Shown one piece after another: positions 5,826 through 61,788 of a DNA stretch of 61,788 nucleotides. Made by a program: the position numbers and the translations under genes. Every line of letters starts with the position of its first letter. Within the stretch, counting starts at the first letter, position 1. The stretch is taken from NCBI GenBank assembly GCA_002269645.1, contig NIVC01004071.1, positions 1-61,788 on the forward strand. The letters run 5' to 3'. Source of the stretch: Macrostomum lignano (lineage: Eukaryota). The notes below the pieces were generated by a model that saw only the letters and a program-made list of their open reading frames with translations, made no database searches and had not been told where the DNA came from.

Positions 5826-8800
5826 TCAGTCCGCCTTGCAGTCGCTGGCAGCGGACAGCCGGCTGTACTCAGCGCTCATGGCGTCCCGAACTCGCTTTGT
5901 CAGGTCGGCGACGTCCGCCTCGGTCAGGCCGGCGGTGGGCAGCGGCTCCAGCACTGTGGCCTCCACTTCGCCCTGCTGGAACAGGCCCGACCGCTTCGAG
6001 TAGAAGGAAGAGTAGTTTGAGAACACGATGGGCACCACCGGCACCTGGCGATGGGGGCGGGAATGACGGCGGGATTATCCCACAGTGACATCATGAAAAT
6101 CCCAGAGTGACATAATGTTAATCCCAGAGTGACATCATGAAAATCCCAGAGTGACATCATGAAAATCCCAGAGTGACGGCAGGATAATCCCAGAGTGACG
6201 GCAGGATAATCCCAGAGTGGCGGCATGATAATCTCAGAGTGACATGATAATCCCAGAGTGACATCAGGATAATCCCAGAGTGACGGGCTGACGGCATGAT
6301 AATTCCAGAGTGACGGCATGATAATCCCAGAGTGTGACGTCAGGATAATCCCAGAGTGACGGCAGGATAATCCCAGAGTGACAGCATGATAATCCCAGAG
6401 TGACATCAGGATAATCTCAGAGTGGCGGCATGATAATCCCAGAGTGACATCACGAAAATCCCAGAGTGACGGCAGGATAATCCTAAGCAACGTGAACCAA
6501 AATCTGCACTATATTAAGACACGCTTAAGGACGCAGTCACAGGGGCACAAAACACAAGGTCCAAAAGGCAGCACGGCGGCATACAATTTAGGTCAGGCAG
6601 CCTCATAGCTGCATGGAAGTCTAATTCCATGTTGTAAGGGCCCGAGCTGCAGGGCTCATGCCGCACAGCCCAGCCCCAGCAGCAGCTCAGAGAACAGTTG
6701 CTCTCAAACGCCCCCGAGCTACTCGCAGATAACGTGCTGGGTGATATTGGCGCGCGAGCAAAGTTGAAAAAAAAGCAAATTTCTTATCGCTAGTGGGGCC
6801 GGCACGGCCTGCAGTTCAATGCCTGTTTTAACTGCTTTCTCAATGCAGTGCCAATGTCTTATACAGGCCTCAGAAAATGAAAATAGGATTTTGAGTTCAC
6901 GATGACCCATAAGCATCCGCGATGACCCAGAAGCATCTAGGATTACCCAGGGGAATTCAAGTTGACCCAGATGAATCCACGATGACCCAGATGAGTTCAC
7001 GATGACCCTAGTGAATCTACGATGACCCAGATGAGTTCACGATGACCGTTGTGAATCCACGATGACCCAGATGAGTTCACGATGACCGTTGTGAATCCAC
7101 GATGACCCAGATGAGTTCACGATGACCCTAGTGAATCCACGATGACCCAGATGAGTTCACGATGACCGTTGTGAATCCACGACATACATGCGCAACCTTG
7201 GGAATCACCCGGCCGTTTCTATTGGCAACACACACATGTAAGTCGCTATTGGCTGAGAGCAGTCACGTGACTACTATTCTGTCCAATAGCGACTTACGTG
7301 TGTGTGTGTTGCCAATAGAAACGGCCGGGTGAATCCCTAGGTTGCACCCAAGCATGATCCACGATGACCCAGAAGCATCTAAAATAACACAGATGAATGA
7401 ATCCACGATGACCCAGATGAATCCACGATGACCCAGATGAATCCACGATGACCCAGATGAATCCAAAAAAACCCAGATGAATCCAAAATGACCCAGATGA
7501 ATCCACGATGACCCAGATGAATCCACGATGATCCAGATAAATTCACGATGACCCAGATGAATCCACGATGACCCAGATGAATCCACGATGACCCAGATGA
7601 ATCCACGATGACCCAGATGAGTTCACAATGACCCAGATGAATCCACGATGACCCAGATAAGTTCACAATGACCCAGATGAATTCCGATGACTCAAACTAA
7701 TCCACAAAGGCCTAAACGAATCCCGCGGTGCCGCACCTGCGCCTGCACAGCCAGATGGAAGGCGCCCTTCTTGAAGTCGCCCAGGTCGGCGCCGGAGACG
7801 CGGGTGCCCTCGGGGAAAATCCACACTCGCACGGTGTCGTCCTGCCGGGCCATGCGGGCGGCCAGGCGGCGCATCTCGGCCTGGGCGGACTGGCGGCCCC
7901 TGGAGACGAAGACGCAGCCGCAGAGCCAGGCGGCCAGGCCGAACCAGCCGGCGAACATCAGCGACTTCTTGGCAACGATGGTGCACTGGTACGGCCACAG
8001 CAGGCCCACGCCCATGAGGTCGATGCTGGACTGGTGGTTGGAGACCAGCACGTAGCTGCCCTGCAGCTGCCGGAGCCTCGCCAGGTTGTTAACCCGGTAG
8101 CGAAGGCCATACAGCCAGCGGGTGAAGGCCAGCGTGGCCATGGGGTACCTGTGAGGTATCAATTAGGGAAGAATTATTGAACTCATGGGAATCTTATGGC
8201 TTTAGGATTATTGTAATTTTATGTAAAATGGCCTGTGGTGAAACCAAGTAGTCATGACACCTGATATTAGGTATAGAATTGATTTTCTCATAGTCTTAAA
8301 GGTATTCTTATTGCTTTCTTTATTGATTTTAAGGATCTAGAGAAGGCTACTTGTACTTTTATGACTAATAATAATGCGTATATTAAGTCAAAACAATGTT
8401 TTGAAGTGATTAATCTATTTATTTATTTACAGCTTTATATAAAATAATGATAAATCATAACATAAATTTTGGTATCAACCCAGTCATTCAAATAAGCATG
8501 AGCAAGGGTTGAAAAACTCTGGCCCATGGGCCACATGCAGCCTATAAAGCCTCTCTATTTGACCCTCATGTCCTTTGAAAATTTGTTCACAATAGCAATC
8601 CAGCCCACTCAATGTTTATATCTCTTCTCTTATCTCTCCTCTTCTCTCTACTCCTCTCTTCTCTCTTCTTTATTCTTTCTCTCTTCTAGCCTGCAGTCAT
8701 TCTTTAGATTAAGGGTTGGCAAACTCCAGCCTGCAGGCCAAATCTGGCCCATGACACCTTCAAGCCTGGCCTGCAACACTCTTACTAACAATGTAAAAGT

Positions 8801-13000: not shown

Positions 13001-14660
<1,660 letters not shown>

Positions 14661-33343: not shown

Positions 33344-36300
33344 TCACGGCTGCTGGCTGTACTTGGCGTGCATCCGCTGGGCCACCTCGTACACGTAGGA
33401 GATGTCAGGCCTGGCGTCCGGGCTGGGCTGGATCATGGCACTGACCAGGTCGCGCAGCTGCGGGCGGCGGCGATGGGGAATTAGAGGCCAGTAAGCTACT
33501 GTCAGTAGTACATGTATACGTAACAGACTGGTGGCGTAAAACAGGAATGCATAAACTCTTGCAGATATTTGAGAAAGCCGTGACTTTTTACGCAATTTTT
33601 GACAAACTTTTTAACCTCAAGAACAGAATAAAAAATCCAGCTCATGGCTTCAGCTCTCCTTCTCACTCTCCTCACTCTCCAGAGAGTAGGAAGGAGAGGG
33701 AATAGAAGATAAGAGATGAGAGAAGAGAGGAGAGGCGAGAGATGGGATGAGAGAAAAGATAGAAGAGTAAAGAGGGGAGAGAGATCAGAGAGGAGAGAGG
33801 GCAGAGGAGAGAGGAGAGCGGAGAGAAAAAGAGGGGAGAGTGGAGAGGGGAGAGGGAAGAGAGGGGAGAGAAAGGAGAGAGAGGAGAGAGTAGAGGGGCG
33901 AGGGGAGAGGGAAGAGAGAGGAGAGAGTAGAGGGGAGAGAAGAGAAAGGGGGGAGAAGGGAGAAGAGAGGAGAGGGGAGAGGAGAGAGAGGGGAGAGAAG
34001 GGAGAGGAGAGGAGAGAGGAGAGAGGAGAGAGGAGAGAGGAGAGAGGAGAGAGGGGAGAGGGGAGAGGGGCGAGAGAGGAGAGGGGAGAGGAGAGAGGGG
34101 GAGAGAAGGGAGAGGAGAGGAGAGAGGAGAGAGGAGAGAGGAGAGAGGAGAGAGGAGAGAGGCGAGATGGGAGAGGAAAAAGGGGAGAAGAGAGAGGGGA
34201 GAGGGGAGGAGTGCTTAAAAGAGATATGAACCATGAGCGGACGGGCTCGCTATTGTGAAGTTTCAAAGGACCCGATGGCCGGATAGAGAGGCTTTGCGGG
34301 TCGGAGTTTGCCGACCCCAGGGTTAGCCCAATTAAACAGGTATGTTGATAATAAAATTAGATTTCAAAATGAGGCGATTTTTAAAGTACTACTGAAAATC
34401 AGAAATATAAAAACAGCTTATTAAACTTGATAACAAGTTTACCTCGCTCGAATAGATGTCCGCAGGCAGGGGCGGATAGTCGCACTGCTCAATCTTCTTG
34501 CACAGCGAGTACAGGTTCATCTTGTCTCCATAGAAGGGGCTCTGCAGGGCGGCCATCTCGTACAGCAGGCAGCCCAGGGACCACAGGTCCGACTTGAAGT
34601 TGTAGCCGTTCTCGTGGATGCGCTCGGGGCTCATGTAGTAGGGCGTGCCGACTGGGGGGGGGCGGCGGGCTGCTATGAGTGATCTAACAGTCCAGACTCC
34701 TGACCCAACAGTCCCGACTCCTGACCCAACAGTCCCAACTCCTGAAACAAGAGTCCAGACTCCTGACATAACAGTCCCGACTCCTGACATAACAGTCCCG
34801 ACTCCTGACCCAACAGTCCAGACTCCTGAAACAAGAGTCCAGACTTTTGACATAACAGTCCCGACTCCTGACCCAACAGTCCCGACTCCTGACCCAACAG
34901 TCCCGACTCCTGACCCAACAGTCCCGACTCCTGACCCAACAGTCCCGACTCCTGACCCAACAGTCCCGACTCCTGACCCAACAGTCCCAACTCCTGACCC
35001 AACAGTCCCGACTCCTGACCCAACAGAGCAGCAACCACTCACCAAGCGAGTGGGCATTGGTGGTCTTGGAGCTGAAGAAGCGACCAAGGCCTAGGTCTCC
35101 CAGCTTAACCTGGCCGCTGGCCGTGATGAACACGTTAGCCGGCTTGATGTCTGCGGGTATCAAAGCCGATGCATACTACTCATTAGTGATATGGACGCCA
35201 ATTTCTAAATGCTTTTAGAGATCTTTGGTGCAATCAATGCAGAACCGGATCCTGAATTTCGCTCCGGTTCAAATCAATAACCAGCTTTAACAAAGGCGAA
35301 GCGATGGAAATGAGTTCACAGTCTTTGACTCTTGGCTCTTTCAGGGGCCACTATTGAGAGAAAAGTCATGCTGAGACTGCCTGCTCCCCACACCCTCAAG
35401 TGAGAAGGCAATGCCCTCAAGCCATGGCAATAGCAGCCCACCTCTGTGCATAATCCGCTTGGAGTGCATGTGGTCCAGGCCGCTGCAGATCTGCACAAAG
35501 TACTTCCAGATGGTCTTCTCCGGGATGAGGCGCTGCTGCTTCTTGAAGTGCTGCAAGGCGGGTTGCAACGGGGCGGCGAGGGGATATGAGAGCGGGGCGG
35601 CCATTGTGCTGTGCGTGAGGATAGGGAAGAGGAAAAGTGGCACTAAGAATTCATTAAGGCACGGAGTGCTAAACCTACACATCTGGAGACTGAGCAGCTT
35701 GAAGAAGTAGTGAGAGCGGAGGGGGTTTCCACTCCAGATATTTCTATCTAGAAGTCTGTGAGATAGTGAAATCAGAGTTTCCACTCCTGATGCTTCTATC
35801 CAGGAGTCCGTGAGGCAGTAGTGAAAGCGGAGGGGATTTCTACTCCAGATGTTTATACCCAGGAGTCCGTGAGGCAGTAGTGAAAGCGGAGGGGATTTCT
35901 ACTCCAGATGTTTATACCCAGGAGTCCGTGAGGCAGTAGTGAAAGTGGAGGGGTTTTCACTCCAGATGTTTATACCCAGGAGTCCGTGAGGCAGTAGTGA
36001 AAGTGAAGGGGTTTTCACTCCAGATGTTTATACCCAGGAGTCCGTGAGGCAGTAGTGAAAGTGAAGGGGTTTTCACTCCAGATGTTTATACCCAAGAGTC
36101 CGTGAGGCAGTAGTGAAAGTGAAGGGGTTTTCACTCCAGATTTTTATACCCAGGAGTCCGTGAGGCAGTAGTGAAAGTGAAGGGGTTTTCACTCCAGATG
36201 TATATATCCAGGAGTCCGTGAGGCAGTAGTGAAAGTGAAGGGGTTTCCACTCCAGAAGTTTATACCCAAGAGTCCGTGAGGCATCAGCAGCTCACCTTGA

Positions 36301-39300
36301 TCATGCGGGACAGGTCCCCGGCGTCGGCCAGCTCCAGCACAATGTTCAGCTCATTGTTCTCAATAAATGAGGCCAGGTAGCGAATGACGTTCGGGTGGTC
36401 CAGTTGCTGCGGTGTGCCGGGCGAGCATAAATTATTCATGAGCAAAACCGGTGGGTCAATAATTCATCTGAGGACTTTTCTTCACACAGCGCCTGCATAA
36501 CCCCCTATCCCATGCCACCTGAGCCTGAGGCTTGGGGGATTAAAAGGCCGGGGCTTCGGCCCTCCATTTGTACCCACCTTGAGCAAGTCGATCTCCTTGA
36601 TGCAGTCCTGCCGCGCCTTGGCGTCCATCATCTCGAAGATCTGCGGGTTGTGGCGGGCGGGCGAGCTCTGCGTTTTGCCTGTTTGATCTCTGCTGGGCCG
36701 TGCTCAAATCTCTCTCTTGAGTTGAGAAAGTTGAGCACTTTGTAAAGTCAATCAAGAATTAGGCAAAAAATCAGCCGAGTTGTGAGTTGCAATCAGGCAA
36801 AAGTGCAAATATGTTAGTTTGCCAGGCGCTTGGCAAATCAAGACTATTTGACGGCCTGCATGGGATTCTGAAAGCTGCCTTTAGGCCGATGTGGGAAGTG
36901 AGGGTCAAGCCGGAGCTAGAGATCAGATCCCAATATGGGAAGTGAGGGTCAAGCCGGAGCTAGAGATCAGATCCCAATATGGGAAGTGAGGGTCAAGCCG
37001 GAGCTAGAGATCAGATCCCAATATGGGAAGTGAGGGTCAAGCCGGAGCTAGAGATCAGATCCCAATATGGGAAGTGAGGGTCAAGCCGGAGCTAGAGATT
37101 AGATCCCAATATGGGAAGTGAGGGTCAAGCCGGAGCTAGAGATCAGATCCCAATATGGGAAGTGAGGGTCAAGCCGGAGCTAGAGATCAGATCCCAATAT
37201 GGGAAGTGAGGGTCAAGCCGGAGCTAGAGATCAGATCCCAATATGGGAAGTGAGGGTCAAGCTGGAGCTAGAGATCAGATCCCAATATGGGAAGTGAGGG
37301 TCAAGCCGGAGCTAGAGATCAGATCCCAATATGGGAAGTGAGGGTCAAGCCGGAGCTAGAGATCAGATCCCAATATGGGAAGTGAGGGTCAAGCCGGAGC
37401 TAGAGATCAGATCCCAATATGGGAAGTGAGGGTCAAGCCGGAGCTAGAGATCAGATCCCAATATGGGAAGTGAGGGTCAAGCCGGAGCTAGAGATCAGAT
37501 CCCAATATGGGAAGTGAGGGTCAAGCCGGAGCTAGAGATCAGATCCCAATATGGGAAGTGAGGGTCAAGCCGGAGCTAGAGATCAGATCCCAATATGGGA
37601 AGTGAGGGTCAAGCCGGAGCTAGAGATCAGATCCCAATATGGGAAGTGAGGGTCAAGCCGGAGCTAGAGATCAGATCCCAATATGGGAAGTGAGGGTCAA
37701 GCCGGAGCTAAGAGATCAGATCCCAATATGGGAAGTGAGGGTCAAGCCGGAGCTAGAGATCAGATCCCAATATGGGAAGTGAGGGTCAAGCCGGAGCTAG
37801 AGATCAGATCCCAATATGGGAAGTGAGGGTCAAGCCGGAGCTAGAGATCAGATCCCAATATGGGAAGTGAGGGTCAAGCCGGAGCTAGAGATCAGATCCC
37901 AATATGGGAAGTGAGGGTCAAGCCGGAGCTAGAGATCAGATCCCAATATGGGAAGTGAGGGTCAAGCCGGAGCTAGAGATCAGATCCCAATATGGGAAGT
38001 GAGGGTCAAGCCGGAGCTAGAGATTAGATCCCAATATGGGAAGTGAGGGTCAAGCCGGAGCTAGAGATCAGATCCCAATATGGGAAGTGAGGGTCAAGCC
38101 GGAGCTAGAGATCAGATCCCAATATGGGAAGTGAGGGTCAAGCCGGAGCTAGAGATCAGATCCCAATATGGGAAGTGAGGGTCAAGCCGGAGCTAGAGAT
38201 CAGATCCCAATATGGGAAGTGAGGGTCAAGCCGGAGCTAGAGATCAGATCCCAATATGGGAAGTGAGGGTCAAGCCGGAGCTAGAGATCAGATCCCAATA
38301 TGGGAAGTGAGGGTCAAGCCGGAGCTAGAGATCAGATCCCAATATGGGAAGTGAGGGTCAAGCCGGAGCTAAGAGATCAGATCCCAATATGGGAAGTGAG
38401 GGTCAAGCCAGAGCTAGAGATCAGATCCCAATATGGGAAGTGAGGGTCAAGCCGGAGCTAGAGATCAGATCCCAATATGGGAAGTGAGGGTCAAGCCGGA
38501 GCTAGAGATCAGATCCCAATATGGGAAGTGAGGGTCAAGCCGGAGCTAGAGATCAGATCCCAATATGGGAAGTGAGGGTCAAGCCGGAGCTAGAGATCAG
38601 ATCCCAATATGGGAAGTGAGGGTCAAGCCGGAGCTAGAGATCAGATCCCAATATGGGAAGTGAGGGTCAAGCCGGAGCTAAGAGATCAGATCCCAATATG
38701 GGAAGTGAGGGTCAAGCCGGAGCTAGAGATCAGATCCCAATATGGGAAGTGAGGGTCAAGCCGGAGCTAGAGATCAGATCCCAATATGGGAAGTGAGGGT
38801 CAAGCCGGAGCTAGAGATCAGATCCCAATATGGGAAGTGAGGGTCAAGCCGGAGCTAAGAGATCAGATCCCAATATGGGAAGTGAGGGTCAAGCCGGAGC
38901 TAGAGATCAGATCCCAATATGGGAAGTGAGGGTCAAGCCGGAGAGAACAATCCAGGAATCCCAGTGCAGAATCCAGCGCAAGGGGCAGCCGAGGCCCTAC
39001 CTGGACCTTCTTAAGTGCCACCACGCATTCGTCCTCGCGGCAGATGGCGCGCCAAACCTCGCTGAACTGGCCCTTGCCAATTTTTTTATCAATTTTGAAC
39101 TTGGCCAGGGAACCGTACTTATTTTCCGGGTCGTGATTCGGCACCACAAAGTCAGCGTCCATGGCTGCTGCAAGACGCGCATTGTTTGAATTTAAATTAG
39201 CAGTTTTGATTGAGTGGCGCTCGGGTTACTAATATTAAATCAGCTGATCAGCAGATCGATAATTAGCCTTGCCAAAATTTGTTATTGCAGTTATTGATCG

Positions 39301-39736
39301 ATTTGTTAGATCGAATTTGATTAGAAAGCTGTATGGCTAAGAAATGATTAGAGAGCAGCGCCGAGTTAGCAAGTTCGAAGCGGCACACTGCATAGCAACA
39401 GGCACAATTGCCTTAGCAACGAATCGAGGCTACATTAGCTACCTGAACTTTCTTGAGCGCCACAACCCTGCCATCAACAATGCAGTGAGCTTTGTACACA
39501 ACCGAGAACTGGCCCTTCCCTATGCGCTTCTCAATCTGCAGGTTGGCCAGCGCGGAGTAGGGGTTCTCTTGGGGCAGCTGCACTGGATAGCTGAAGTCTG
39601 CATCATAGGCAGCAGCTGCCGCCGGCACATGAGGAGCAGCAAGTGCAGTATAGTACAGAGTGCCCTGCTGTGGCTGCTGCTGCTGTTGAAGAAAAGCCTC
39701 GCCAATGTTATAGCGATAGTCCTGCTGACCGTCCAT
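33344..39736 (-). CDS. NEK7: Serine/threonine kinase NEK6/7-like with two alternative first exons
   Basis: Exons 1a 39443-39736 or 1b 39001-39162, then 36578-36640, 36296-36406, 35442-35550, 35043-35150, 34443-34651 and 33344-33457, all in phase. GKGQFS, VALKK, HRDIKPAN, DLG (typical of NEK6/7), GTPYYMSPE and SDLWSLG motifs; 291 aa with exon 1b. Confidence 0.95.
33655..34210. repeat. Polypurine GA-rich low-complexity tract
   Basis: (GAGAG/GGAGA)-type repeats in the last NEK intron. Confidence 0.95.
34688..35023. repeat. 21-bp minisatellite, ~16 copies
   Basis: Unit CCCGACTCCTGACCCAACAGT. Confidence 0.95.
35705..36283. repeat. 59-bp minisatellite, ~9-10 copies
   Basis: Period 59 (GGAGTCCGTGAGG at 35803 and 35862); each unit carries an AGTGAAA/TTTCACT stem. 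Confidence 0.92.
36892..38942. repeat. 44-bp minisatellite, ~46 copies, highly homogeneous
   Basis: Unit GGGAAGTGAGGGTCAAGCCGGAGCTAGAGATCAGATCCCAATAT. Confidence 0.97.
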
Positions 39737-42060
39737 TGTATGCTCTGTGTGCAGCCTACAGACTGTCAGTTGTCTAGCAAATCAGGTTGGCATGGCAACC
39801 AATGTTACAGTGATGACCCCAGATTTCATTACTGACTTAATTATGATCTTTTTGAAGAAAAGTAGAAAAAGTAGAAGAAAAGCATTATATGTTAACAAAA
39901 GCTCCTATAATAAAGCATTCCTACTAGAAATTAATGTTTAAAACCTATAGAATTTTGCTACTAAATCTCAAGAATTACCAGCTTATAAGTCTTAATAAAC
40001 ATTAGCCTATTGCTTTGCTAAAAAATTGTCACTAAACATTTGCTAAAAAAACTAAGAGCATGCTAATTTTTCTAGATACCTGCATATTTACAAAATATCA
40101 CTTATTTTAACAAAATTGTTTGACTTTATATAAAGTAATAGTTTCTATTAGACCATCTTAGAAGGAACATGTTTCTTAAATCTTGATTTTTCCTTAACAT
40201 TTCTAATTAGCTTCAATTTTATTTTATCACTTTATTGACAATTAATAAGTCAATAGAAATATATTATTTTTTATTATTCAAGCAATATAGCTTAATTATA
40301 GTTGTTAAAAAATAAGAGTAAAATTAACATAAAATAAACTAAAAATCTGATTTCTTTAACAGTAACAAAGATTTTCTTTGATTAATTAATATTCTATAGA
40401 TCACATTATACTTATCTAAATAAATACATTAGGGTAGAAATTATTTTTGTAATGAGAACAATAACTTTGACTTAAGATAGCTTTGAGCAAAAATTAAAAT
40501 TAAATTAAAATTATTCTAAAAGTACTATATTTCTTGTTAAAGGTTGCAAATACTTTTAAAACAGAAATAAAACATTAGAAAGCAATCAAAATATGGTCAC
40601 AGTCACATAACTATAACTATTTATTAGTTGAAAATTGATTGGATTACTTTATTATTGAACTTTAAAATGAAGGTTAAAAAACAATGTTAAGAAATATCTT
40701 TATGTTTTTTAGGCCTAGCCTTACGCTAAAAGGCTTAGTCTAAGATAGGCCTAGCAAAGCCTGTCTACAACAGCAATAATGCTTACTAAGCTTATAATTG
40801 TAGGGTAGGCAAGCTGCTGCTGGCAACAGTGGCAAGGGGCAAGGGCCAAGGCTTTTAGTTTGGGCAAGGGCAGGAGCATGGTACAAGCTAATTAATACAT
40901 GTACAGTATCCTTATAGCACGTTAATTTTTAACATTACATTTAAAACATTAATTTTGCTCGTCTATTAACGTTATATACACAAAATTACTAAATATTTAA
41001 TGATGTAGGTATGGTTAAACTGGTAATAAAAACGGCATTCTTAAGCAATCTAAATTTTTCTGCTCTAGCTTTTCTTCGAACTGTCCTGTGGCAATGGTGT
41101 AAGAAAGGGCCTGCAATTTTAGACAAGAAATTTAGATTTAGCTTGCTAATAAAAAATTAATTTTCTGCTTTTTAGAAAGCGACGTCTAGTGAATTAGATT
41201 TAATACTACGTTTGTTTAAATTTTCGCTTCTTTGCTTTACGGAGTAGGCTACAGATCGATAGATGTGTTGTTGCTTTTCAGTTGGGGACCATTGTATTGT
41301 TATATACAGTGGTCCTTGCTCACTTGCTCAGTGTTATATACAGTGGTCCTTGCTCAGTCACTTGCTCAGTGTTATGTACAGTAGGTCCTTGTGACTGAGC
41401 ACTTAGAAAGGCATTGCAAGAATTTGTCAACTATGTAAAACGGATTAGAGATATAGATGCATTATGTGGGTAGCATTTTTCCATTCAAAATTTATTACAC
41501 GTCCAAGCTTAGTGAGTTGTTCATGGGGTTGGGGACCATGCACAGCTCATTGATAATTTTCTTGTCTCTTCACTTGTGATGTCTGTGTTGTGGTGGCCGG
41601 GCCTAGCTGATTGCCCTAGAATCTGGTGGTAAAGTACATGTACAAGCCCAATATGCAGATAGCCCTTAATGTTACATGTGTACGAGATATGTACATGTAA
41701 ATATGATGCGCTAACTATTTTCGATCCGCACACAATTCCATTTTTGAGCTGCATGTTACAACTGTATACATTTTCTGAAATCAATAGTCTCCTATAAGTG
41801 TCCTTCAACGTCAATTTTTCGCTTATAGTCAATCGTGCTGCAGGTCCTGTCCCACTGGGAATTTAAATGTTCTATCAAGGACCAATAGCAGTATATAATT
41901 ATGGTTAATAGTACGAAGCAAGAACTGTTTCTTTGATAAGTGCAGGCCGTTTAATTACTACATCGATAAAACACTGCCTCTTTGGGAGGCTAAACTACAA
42001 TTTGGATTTTTTTAGTTCAGAGCAGCTTGACTGTCTCATTTCGGTGTGCGATTATAGGCA

Positions 42061-61788
<19,728 letters not shown>

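Follow-up and report, generated by a model that had tools for sequence, protein, structure and literature searches.

Can a single gene supply two different kinases by choosing between two versions of its first coding exon? This question is raised by the NEK6/7 gene of Macrostomum lignano, a flatworm amenable to transgenesis and RNAi. A preliminary description of the locus had noted two tandem first exons, each with its own Gly loop and catalytic lysine, and had proposed that one locus thereby makes two kinases. Here, we have followed up this proposal by a computational analysis of the entire stretch of DNA concerned (61,788 nucleotides of contig NIVC01004071.1, referred to below as the window). 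The best explanation, to which we assign a probability of roughly 0.8, is a NEK6/7 gene in which an ancient tandem duplication has produced a pair of homologous first coding exons, used alternatively to give two kinases.

Results

Gene structure

The M. lignano NEK6/7 gene lies on the minus strand of the window and consists of two alternative first coding exons and six common exons. The a-type first coding exon, 1a (39443–39736), comprises 294 nt, i.e. 98 codons, with its ATG at 39736–39734. It is separated by an AT-rich interval of 280 bp (39163–39442), with CAGCC at its 3' end, from the b-type first coding exon, 1b (39001–39162), which comprises 162 nt or 54 codons with the ATG at 39162–39160. 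Exon 2 (36578–36640) begins at 36640 directly after cccgcag, an acceptor common to both first exons, and encodes 21 residues at the start of helix alphaC. The gene model continues with exon 3 (36296–36406), exon 4 (35442–35550), exon 5 (35043–35150), into which the HRDIKPAN motif continues and which also contains DLGLG, exon 6 (34443–34651) and exon 7, the coding part of which (33344–33457) includes the stop codon TGA at 33346–33344. Exactly two Gly-loop exons were found in the 61.8-kb window by tblastn. The tandem arrangement noted in the preliminary description is borne out at the positions given there.

The intron between exons 1b and 2 (36641–39000) carries a minisatellite with a 44-bp unit, present in 46.5 copies at 36892–38943. 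M. lignano has another copy of this locus (L002, on scaffold NIVC01000020.1), which shows the same exon layout; in it, this intron measures 855 bp and its minisatellite array is much shorter. When the window was scanned for Rfam families and tRNAs, there were no matches, and hence no spliced-leader (SL) RNA gene, and a PSMB7-like gene was not found in the window, though such a gene is adjacent to NEK6/7 in other phyla. Upstream of NEK6/7, a glutamate-receptor gene is located on the same strand and ends at approximately 42062.

Predicted protein products

Both first exons are intact, start with an ATG of their own and are in phase 0 with the same exon 2, as had been described before. The part encoded by exon 1a has a Q/A-rich leader ahead of its Gly loop, GKGQFS, and of VALKK with the beta3 lysine; the exon ends with a 33-residue stretch and has the phase-0 donor CAG/gtagct. 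Exon 1b encodes a short leader with the motif VPxxDPxNxY, followed by GKGQFS and VALKK, and likewise ends with a 33-residue stretch in front of a phase-0 donor (CAG/gtaggg). Joined to the common exons, 1a yields an intact kinase of 335 amino acids (isoform A) and 1b one of 291 amino acids (isoform B), with GKGQFS, VALKK, HRDIKPAN and DLGLG as catalytic motifs in the translation. In both isoforms, the Pfam Pkinase match (E about 1e-65, covering profile positions 2–256) starts at profile position 2 within the alternative exon; the kinase domain corresponds to residues 67–319 of 335 in isoform A and to residues 23–275 of 291 in isoform B. A Pfam search of both isoforms detected no domain besides Pkinase.

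In the PDB, the top-ranking matches are without exception human NEK7 (E 3e-157, residues 12–285 aligned, approximately 80% identity), in which the exon 1/exon 2 boundary falls at Q66/I67, and the best database matches, with 80–85% identity, are named NEK6-subfamily or Nek7. Among representative proteins clustered at 50% identity, the matches were for the most part vertebrate or fused models, and close relatives did not stand out. The architecture, i.e. a short N-terminal extension plus a kinase domain without a C-terminal regulatory domain, agrees with that described for NEK6/7 (PMC7750478). By these similarities, the predicted protein is a member of the NEK6/7 subfamily of NIMA-related kinases. 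Isoform A features a long low-complexity leader and a loop region (IEK.IG.GQFSVVY) which, to judge from sequence, is of the ancestral type, with the 16-residue loop region of isoform B being the derived one.

Age of the exon pair and selection

Between exons 1a and 1b, 26 of 46 amino acids are identical, and the likeness reaches back to DADF, a motif at the beginning of 1b. Third codon positions agree at 14 of 46 sites, with pS at 0.78–0.79 and pN at 0.30–0.33. This saturation of synonymous sites shows that neither exon is a recent copy of the other; in their pattern of divergence they are old tandem duplicates under purifying selection. In L002, the non-coding DNA of which is 3–5% diverged from the window locus, all eight first-exon differences (six in 1a, two in 1b) are synonymous changes at third positions, and stop codons are found 15 and 13 codons upstream of the ATGs of 1a and 1b, respectively. 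With only two synonymous changes in 1b, this within-species selection signal is weak on its own for that exon.

A paralog in M. lignano carries a b-type exon and no a-type one; a low-stringency search within 10 kb upstream of it did not reveal an a-type relic. Comparison of 1b with the b exon of this paralog gives a pN of 0.12 at a pS of 0.96, a low non-synonymous divergence that could partly reflect selection on what is the paralog's sole first exon.

The exon pair in other animals

The order a, b, exon 2 also occurs in the annelid Paralvinella and the brachiopod Lingula. In both, the b exon has its own ATG 53–57 codons before a phase-0 CAG/gta donor, with a stop codon shortly upstream, and in Lingula it is located approximately 800 bp downstream of the a exon. 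The b isoform predicted for Lingula is identical to XP_013412664.1, annotated as ‘Nek7 isoform X2’, and the a isoform corresponds to X1. A single exon was found in Lottia, Priapulus and amphioxus within the sequence examined.

A phylogeny of the individual exons, suggested in the preliminary description, separates a from b: the a and b exons of one species never group together (0 of 500 bootstraps in all three species), and the b exons cluster across phyla, with 1b of the window being an ortholog of the Lingula and Paralvinella b exons. By sequence and position in the tree, the exon pair is conserved across Platyhelminthes, Annelida and Brachiopoda. The exon-1 peptides of the two vertebrate proteins, NEK6 and NEK7, form a group of their own, apart from the spiralian a or b types. 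As both vertebrate genes group together, the a/b split is a separate spiralian event and not the source of the vertebrate pair; the comparison with NEK6 and NEK7 drawn in the preliminary description is a fair functional analogy and does not extend to origin. The residue following GQFS (V versus E) was considered as a marker of exon type and rejected, because E is found in the apparently single a-like exons of crinoids, sea urchins and vertebrates; a 14-residue motif together with tree position is a better marker of the b type.

Transcript and protein evidence

In M. lignano, transcript-derived NCBI models (P0269, P0390) show a direct junction of exon 1a with exon 2. The partial proteins PAA93825.1 (P0269) and PAA48738.1/PAA67148.1 (P0390) begin with stretches of 11 and 12 residues, the leading residues of which are the in-frame translation of the 30–33 nt upstream of the ATG at 39736; read from these proteins, the 5'UTR of the isoform-A transcript is colinear with the genome and extends at least over 39737–39769. 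The junction of 1b with exon 2 of the window locus was not found among transcript or protein records, whereas a b-to-exon-2 junction is seen in the b-only paralog and annotated in Lingula. The exact sequences of isoforms A and B are absent from the protein collection, as are the window's open reading frames for alpha-tubulin, 1a and 1b. In principle, the b function could come from the b-only paralog. Joint inclusion of both exons, using the normal donor of 1a, results in a frameshift and a stop codon in exon 2.

It had also been noted that an AG is present shortly upstream of each ATG, as a possible alternative trans-splice acceptor. These AGs do exist, but those near the ATG of 1a are inside the 5'UTR of the transcript-derived models; because the models run colinearly with the genome through them, exon 1a does not begin at these AGs there. 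Moreover, the models give no sign of trans-splicing at 1a, and no TTGCAG-type hexamer is present in the 33 nt before its ATG. Exon 1b is preceded by TTGCAG (39173–39168), 5 nt upstream of its ATG and kept in L002. This acceptor-like hexamer matches [T/C]TNCAG, a motif enriched at the SL trans-splice acceptors of M. lignano, where approximately 30% of the genes are SL trans-spliced (PMC8629364). It is possibly a trans-splice acceptor; concatenated UniProt models take it as a cis acceptor.

Discussion

How could two kinases arise from this gene? Each first exon would bring its own start codon and encode both an N-terminal regulatory tail and strands beta1–beta3 of the N-lobe with the Gly-rich loop and the VALKK lysine, and would splice in phase 0 to the common exon 2, which begins helix alphaC. 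Isoforms A and B would thus have an identical catalytic core from alphaC onward and differ in their ATP-lid and tail modules. For isoform A, transcription would start upstream of 1a, with 1b being removed within the intron. For isoform B, transcripts may start within the 280 bp that separate 1a from 1b, where we infer that an internal start site or an outron may be located, and they might be capped by SL trans-splicing at TTGCAG, 5 nt before the ATG. The proposal of one locus and two kinases has good, if indirect, support from the constraint on both exons, the occurrence of the pair in three phyla, the Lingula isoforms and the observed 1a junction, against which stands the unseen 1b junction at the locus itself.

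Two exons in tandem could also be chosen by classical mutually exclusive splicing, i.e. from a single promoter or from a non-coding exon further upstream that both have in common, with each spliced in as an internal exon through the AG in front of its ATG and with frameshift and NMD enforcing exclusivity. The AG dinucleotides before both ATGs and the premature stop after double inclusion fit such a scheme, and mutual exclusivity is frequent among exons duplicated in tandem (PMC9013439). However, the isoform-A models continue colinearly through the AGs nearest to the ATG of 1a, which means that 1a acts as a first exon in these models. In addition, an upstream exon is not known, and the glutamate-receptor gene ends at about 42062; we therefore regard this mode of choice as unlikely. 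Still less probable is that 1b is a non-expressed relic, with the window locus making isoform A only and the b-type kinase coming from the b-only paralog. This paralog does exist, and the transcript-based NCBI annotation has only isoform-A models for the locus, but 1b has stayed open in two diverged copies, with its ATG, Gly loop, lysine and GT donor retained and with solely synonymous differences. A relic old enough to show a pS of 0.96 against the paralog would have decayed, yet the pN of 1b is only 0.12, and the pair has been kept in Lingula with both isoforms annotated.

Two further readings have very little in their favour. UniProt A0A1I8GQY4 and A0A1I8ICQ9 translate both exons in series, which would produce a kinase in which the first part of the N-lobe is present twice. 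An in-frame path for this indeed exists: it leads from a GT that lies 22 nt beyond the regular donor of 1a to TTGCAG and inserts VANVASIPA, and a similar concatenated model has been generated for Paralvinella. Yet the donor required (C/GTTGCT) is poor, transcript-derived models and RefSeq isoforms take one exon at a time, and two consecutive beta1–beta3 segments do not suit a kinase fold. The Pfam domain starts only once, in whichever of the two exons is used. The preference of gene finders for the longest open frame would account for the fused models, so that serial translation seems highly improbable. An assembly artefact, i.e. a collapsed or misjoined duplicate, which the preliminary description had named as a potential refutation, could come to mind since M. 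lignano, according to a published account (PMC10468722), is a hidden polyploid in which near-identical copies abound. This reading has next to no probability in view of the identical arrangement on the independent scaffold NIVC01000020.1, the synonymous saturation between the two exons and the orthologous arrangement in two other phyla.

Within the alternative first exon explanation, the retention of the pair since before the divergence of flatworms, annelids and brachiopods argues that the two versions do different jobs. We lean, if only by a modest degree, towards a spiralian NEK6/7 exon switch that predates this split, exchanges the Gly-rich loop, the beta3 strand and the N-terminal docking tail, and represents an undescribed, deeply conserved way to two functionally distinct kinases, independently paralleling NEK6/NEK7 and in M. 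lignano perhaps involving an internal SL trans-splice site. Literature searches found no published description of alternative first exons in NEK6/7; what is already known is that the two Lingula products are listed in RefSeq as Nek7 isoforms.

More generally, a kinase can diversify its ATP-lid together with its N-terminal regulatory tail through exon choice. The gene can serve as a natural experiment to find the part of NEK6/7 on which specificity for partners or substrates depends, a question that is usually framed via the tails of vertebrate NEK6 and NEK7. With its b-only paralog, M. lignano further exemplifies how alternative exons and gene duplicates can be exchanged for one another. At a practical level, the two exons have been wrongly fused in some database models (UniProt A0A1I8GQY4 and A0A1I8ICQ9, GenBank KAK2145145.1).

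Relation to known systems

The closest known counterpart is Nek7 of Lingula anatina, with isoforms X1 (XP_013412663.1) and X2 (XP_013412664.1/XP_013412665.1), which shares with M. lignano the order a, b, exon 2 and an ATG in each first exon, with an alternative use that is annotated in Lingula and predicted in M. lignano, but belongs to another phylum, has a short a leader and is known from RefSeq annotation only. To our knowledge, SL trans-splicing has not been reported in brachiopods. Vertebrate NEK6 and NEK7, which differ chiefly in their tails, are also two NEK6/7-type kinases with short N-terminal extensions, and the spiralian locus would reach a similar outcome by exon choice. Their catalytic domains are more than 85% identical in sequence (PMC7750478). 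Whereas the vertebrate pair arose by whole-gene duplication, the spiralian a/b split also alters residues in beta1–beta3.

In human UGT1A and Drosophila hydra, tandem homologous first exons with promoters of their own are chosen singly and joined to common exons, which yields different N-terminal functional modules on one C-terminal part (PMC9013439); exons 1a and 1b would be chosen likewise. In contrast to these, M. lignano NEK6/7 has only two such exons, the swapped module consists of the ATP-lid (beta1–beta3) and the regulatory tail, and the separate promoters are putative. Exons 1a and 1b resemble exons 6a and 6b of JNK in that tandem-duplicated exons swap a structural segment of the kinase domain. 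JNK 6a and 6b are internal, mutually exclusive tandem exons of the kinase C-lobe without a start codon of their own, whereas 1a and 1b are first coding exons and encode the N-lobe. A closer parallel to JNK is the NEK7-like C-lobe exon pair of echinoderms: the isoforms of Acanthaster and Anneissia differ in a C-lobe exon and not in the N-lobe exon.

Results

A NEK6/7 gene with two homologous first coding exons

The minus strand of the window encodes, between positions 39736 and 33344, a kinase that by the subfamily criteria tested is of the NEK6/7 type. With a human NEK7 sequence used solely as a probe, tblastn gave seven colinear blocks in the window, and the Gly-loop/beta3 segment was matched twice, separately, at 39559-39404 and 39129-38998. 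Reading the DNA and assembling the gene gave, all on the minus strand, exon 1a (39736-39443; 98 codons), exon 1b (39162-39001; 54 codons) and the common exons 2 (36640-36578), 3 (36406-36296), 4 (35550-35442), 5 (35150-35043), 6 (34651-34443) and 7 (33457-33344, terminating with TGA), with every intron being GT..AG. Exons 1a and 1b both start with ATG and end in phase 0 at VALKKVQ followed by gta, and isoform A (1a plus exons 2-7) and isoform B (1b plus exons 2-7) are proteins of 335 and 291 amino acids, respectively, open without interruption. The two tandem first exons of the preliminary description were thus correct in all details, i.e. coordinates, ATGs, phase and fit to exon 2.

The Pkinase domain (Pfam) starts, at profile position 2, within the first exon, be it 1a or 1b. 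In an alignment to human NEK7 structures, the boundary with exon 2 corresponds to Q66/I67; by the secondary structure of NEK7, the alternative exons therefore encode the N-terminal extension and strands beta1 to beta3, together with the Gly-rich loop and the catalytic lysine of beta3, and helix alphaC begins with exon 2. The N-terminal tails differ between the isoforms, VPxxDPxNxY being common to b-type tails across phyla, and around the ATP lid there are approximately 16 differences in the final 42 residues of the exons, one of them being W in place of Y behind the Gly loop. Such differences might, hypothetically, affect how partners dock, how nucleotide is handled, or both.

Over their last 46 codons, 1a and 1b share 26 amino acids, with identity at 33/46 first, 32/46 second but only 14/46 third codon positions, and Nei-Gojobori proportions of 0.78-0.79 for synonymous (pS; saturated) and 0.30-0.33 for nonsynonymous differences (pN). 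These values indicate that the duplication is old and that the protein sequence has been conserved since. Homology extends to the first residues of 1b (MDADF, compared with YDADF in 1a), and 1b is therefore the counterpart of the last ~55 codons of 1a, which has an extra Q/A-rich leader beyond this part.

Further copies in M. lignano and surroundings of the gene

An assembly artefact is ruled out by a second copy (L002) on the independent scaffold NIVC01000020.1, with non-coding DNA diverged by 3-5% and the same order of 1a, 1b and exon 2. It differs from the window at six sites in exon 1a and two in exon 1b, and since all eight changes are synonymous and in third position, the comparison shows purifying selection, with strong evidence for 1a and weak evidence for 1b taken by itself. 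Most of the intron between 1b and exon 2 is occupied by a 44-bp minisatellite (36892-38943; 46.5 copies, 99% match), an array that is far shorter in L002; three more arrays in introns are found at 34686-35026 (21-bp unit), 35706-36283 (58-bp unit) and, AG-rich, at 33712-34211.

A second M. lignano NEK6/7 gene (L001; NIVC01002209.1, 9986-12850) has a single first exon, of the b type; a search of the 10 kb upstream of it, also at low stringency, revealed no remnant of an a-type exon. Its models (PAA59953.1, PAA52793.1 and A0A1I8HED8) are 84% identical and have the b-type start MEVDFTVPSYDPQNKY. Between 1b and the b exon of this paralog, pS is 0.96 (saturated) and pN 0.12; the paralog is AT-rich in codon composition and the window gene GC-rich. 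The role of one isoform may here have moved to a separate gene. The two alternative first coding exons, 1a and 1b, are shown to be intact and under selection.

Elsewhere, the window contains ionotropic glutamate receptor exons (42062-43803, minus strand) ending ~2.3 kb upstream of exon 1a, a near-intronless alpha-tubulin (13302-14660, plus), a KH-domain/Q-rich protein (351-2674, plus), an acyltransferase-like fragment (7692-8162, minus), these four genes being recognised as ORFs, two long, GC-rich gag-pol open reading frames of LTR-retrotransposon type with protease, reverse transcriptase and integrase-like sequence (47113-51014 and 55221-59050, both plus) and a (GTT)n/(AAC)n microsatellite that is about 450 bp long (53208-53813).

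Database models

A profile search with both isoforms identified M. lignano, for which there are three kinds of model, one being that of the paralog above. The NCBI transcript-based partial proteins PAA93825.1 and PAA48738.1/PAA67148.1 equal isoform A exactly and show 1a spliced straight to exon 2; they begin with 10-11 residues read from the 5'UTR, and this stretch is colinear with the genomic sequence that precedes the ATG at 39736. UniProt A0A1I8GQY4 and A0A1I8ICQ9 have 1a and 1b in series via VANVAS(I/L)PA, a path that we could reproduce: it requires a poor donor whose last exon base is 39421, 22 nt past the normal one, and TTGCAG in front of 1b as the acceptor. We consider this path a gene-finder artefact. 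With the normal donor, inclusion of 1b after 1a makes the transcript 164 or 167 nt longer and leads to a stop in exon 2. In GenBank KAK2145145.1 of the annelid Paralvinella palmiformis, two Gly-loop exons are likewise concatenated, and all three proteins with two Gly loops are very likely mis-annotations.

The exon pair in other phyla

In Paralvinella, an a-type exon is followed ~600 bp downstream by a b-type exon and then exon 2, an order also found in the brachiopod Lingula anatina. In both species the b exon has an ATG of its own, which lies 53-57 codons ahead of a CAG/gta donor in phase 0 and has a stop codon close upstream. The Lingula b isoform built from the genome equals XP_013412664.1/XP_013412665.1 ('Nek7 isoform X2') exactly and the a isoform equals X1, i.e. 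RefSeq already annotates alternative use in a brachiopod. In P0274, a protein from a Logan-assembled contig in the 90%-identity cluster of the Paralvinella protein, the a-type exon is spliced straight to exon 2. Within the gene and 10 kb upstream, a single exon is present in the mollusc Lottia (b-like), Priapulus and Branchiostoma lanceolatum (both a-like).

Phylogeny of each exon was a check proposed in the preliminary description. In a neighbour-joining tree of 42-residue exon peptides (500 bootstraps; few characters, with weak deep nodes), a and b of one species never grouped (0/500 bootstraps for every one of the three species). The b exons cluster across the three phyla, and the single exons found in molluscs, in Lamellibrachia and in a bryozoan fall in with them; a-type exons resemble those of cnidarian, sponge, amphioxus and ecdysozoan genes. 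The simplest reading is one duplication before the flatworm/annelid/brachiopod split, with the a-type keeping the ancestral sequence, the b-type being derived and one exon lost later in some lineages.

A proteasome beta-subunit gene (Pfam Proteasome and Pr_beta_C) adjoins NEK6/7 in Paralvinella, Lingula, Lottia and Branchiostoma (loci L003, L004, L005 and L007), and none is present in the M. lignano window; the human NEK6-PSMB7 neighbourhood is a parallel.

Discussion

How might one first exon be chosen? Isoform A would start from a conventional promoter located in the 2.3 kb of AT-rich spacer that follows the glutamate receptor gene. The preliminary description had suggested alternative promoters or alternative trans-splice acceptors, with an AG just upstream of each ATG; since isoform-A models begin 30-33 nt before the 1a ATG and read colinearly through the nearest AGs, a trans-splice acceptor immediately before 1a is unsupported. 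A non-coding leader exon shared by both isoforms, combined with classical mutually exclusive splicing, seems rather improbable to us. Isoform B would probably start within the 280-bp interval between 1a and 1b. In M. lignano, a 35-nt spliced leader is found on ~30% of genes, with acceptors enriched for [T/C]TNCAG (PMC8629364); the TTGCAG that lies 5 nt ahead of the 1b ATG, and is conserved in L002, fits this motif. Because acceptors preceded by a cis donor tend to be cis-spliced (as noted in PMC8629364), leader addition at 1b would be expected mainly on transcripts initiating downstream of the 1a donor.

That one locus makes two kinases by exon choice, as initially proposed, is a reading largely supported by the conserved and constrained exon pair, Lingula X1/X2 and the 1a-exon 2 models, whereas an exact look-up in the protein collection gave no match to isoform B of this locus. 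Alternative exons derived from tandem duplication are a known class, to which the arrangement belongs, with homologous variable first exons as in UGT1A or Drosophila hydra (PMC9013439) being the more specific likeness. Vertebrate NEK6 and NEK7 are >85% identical, each with a short N-terminal extension (PMC7750478). Their exon peptides group with each other; the vertebrate gene pair therefore arose independently, and the parallel drawn in the preliminary description is apt for the outcome but not for ancestry.

Searches of the open-access literature gave no account of duplicated exons in NEK6/7 or of a kinase Gly loop encoded by alternative exons; the Lingula ortholog, already in RefSeq, has apparently never been discussed in print. 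What makes the arrangement of interest is how deeply it is conserved and how unusual the swapped module is. Echinoderm NEK7-like genes (starfish, sea urchins and crinoids; protein records P0272 and P0430-P0443) have another homologous alternative exon pair, one of them MAALDSPFYSEGLDLWTLCEKIDKCEYPPLP, in the C-lobe, and NEK6/7 has thus had an independent tandem exon duplication in another part of the kinase; some RefSeq isoforms, e.g. Acanthaster X1/X2, Asterias X1 and Antedon X3, contain both C-lobe exons in series.
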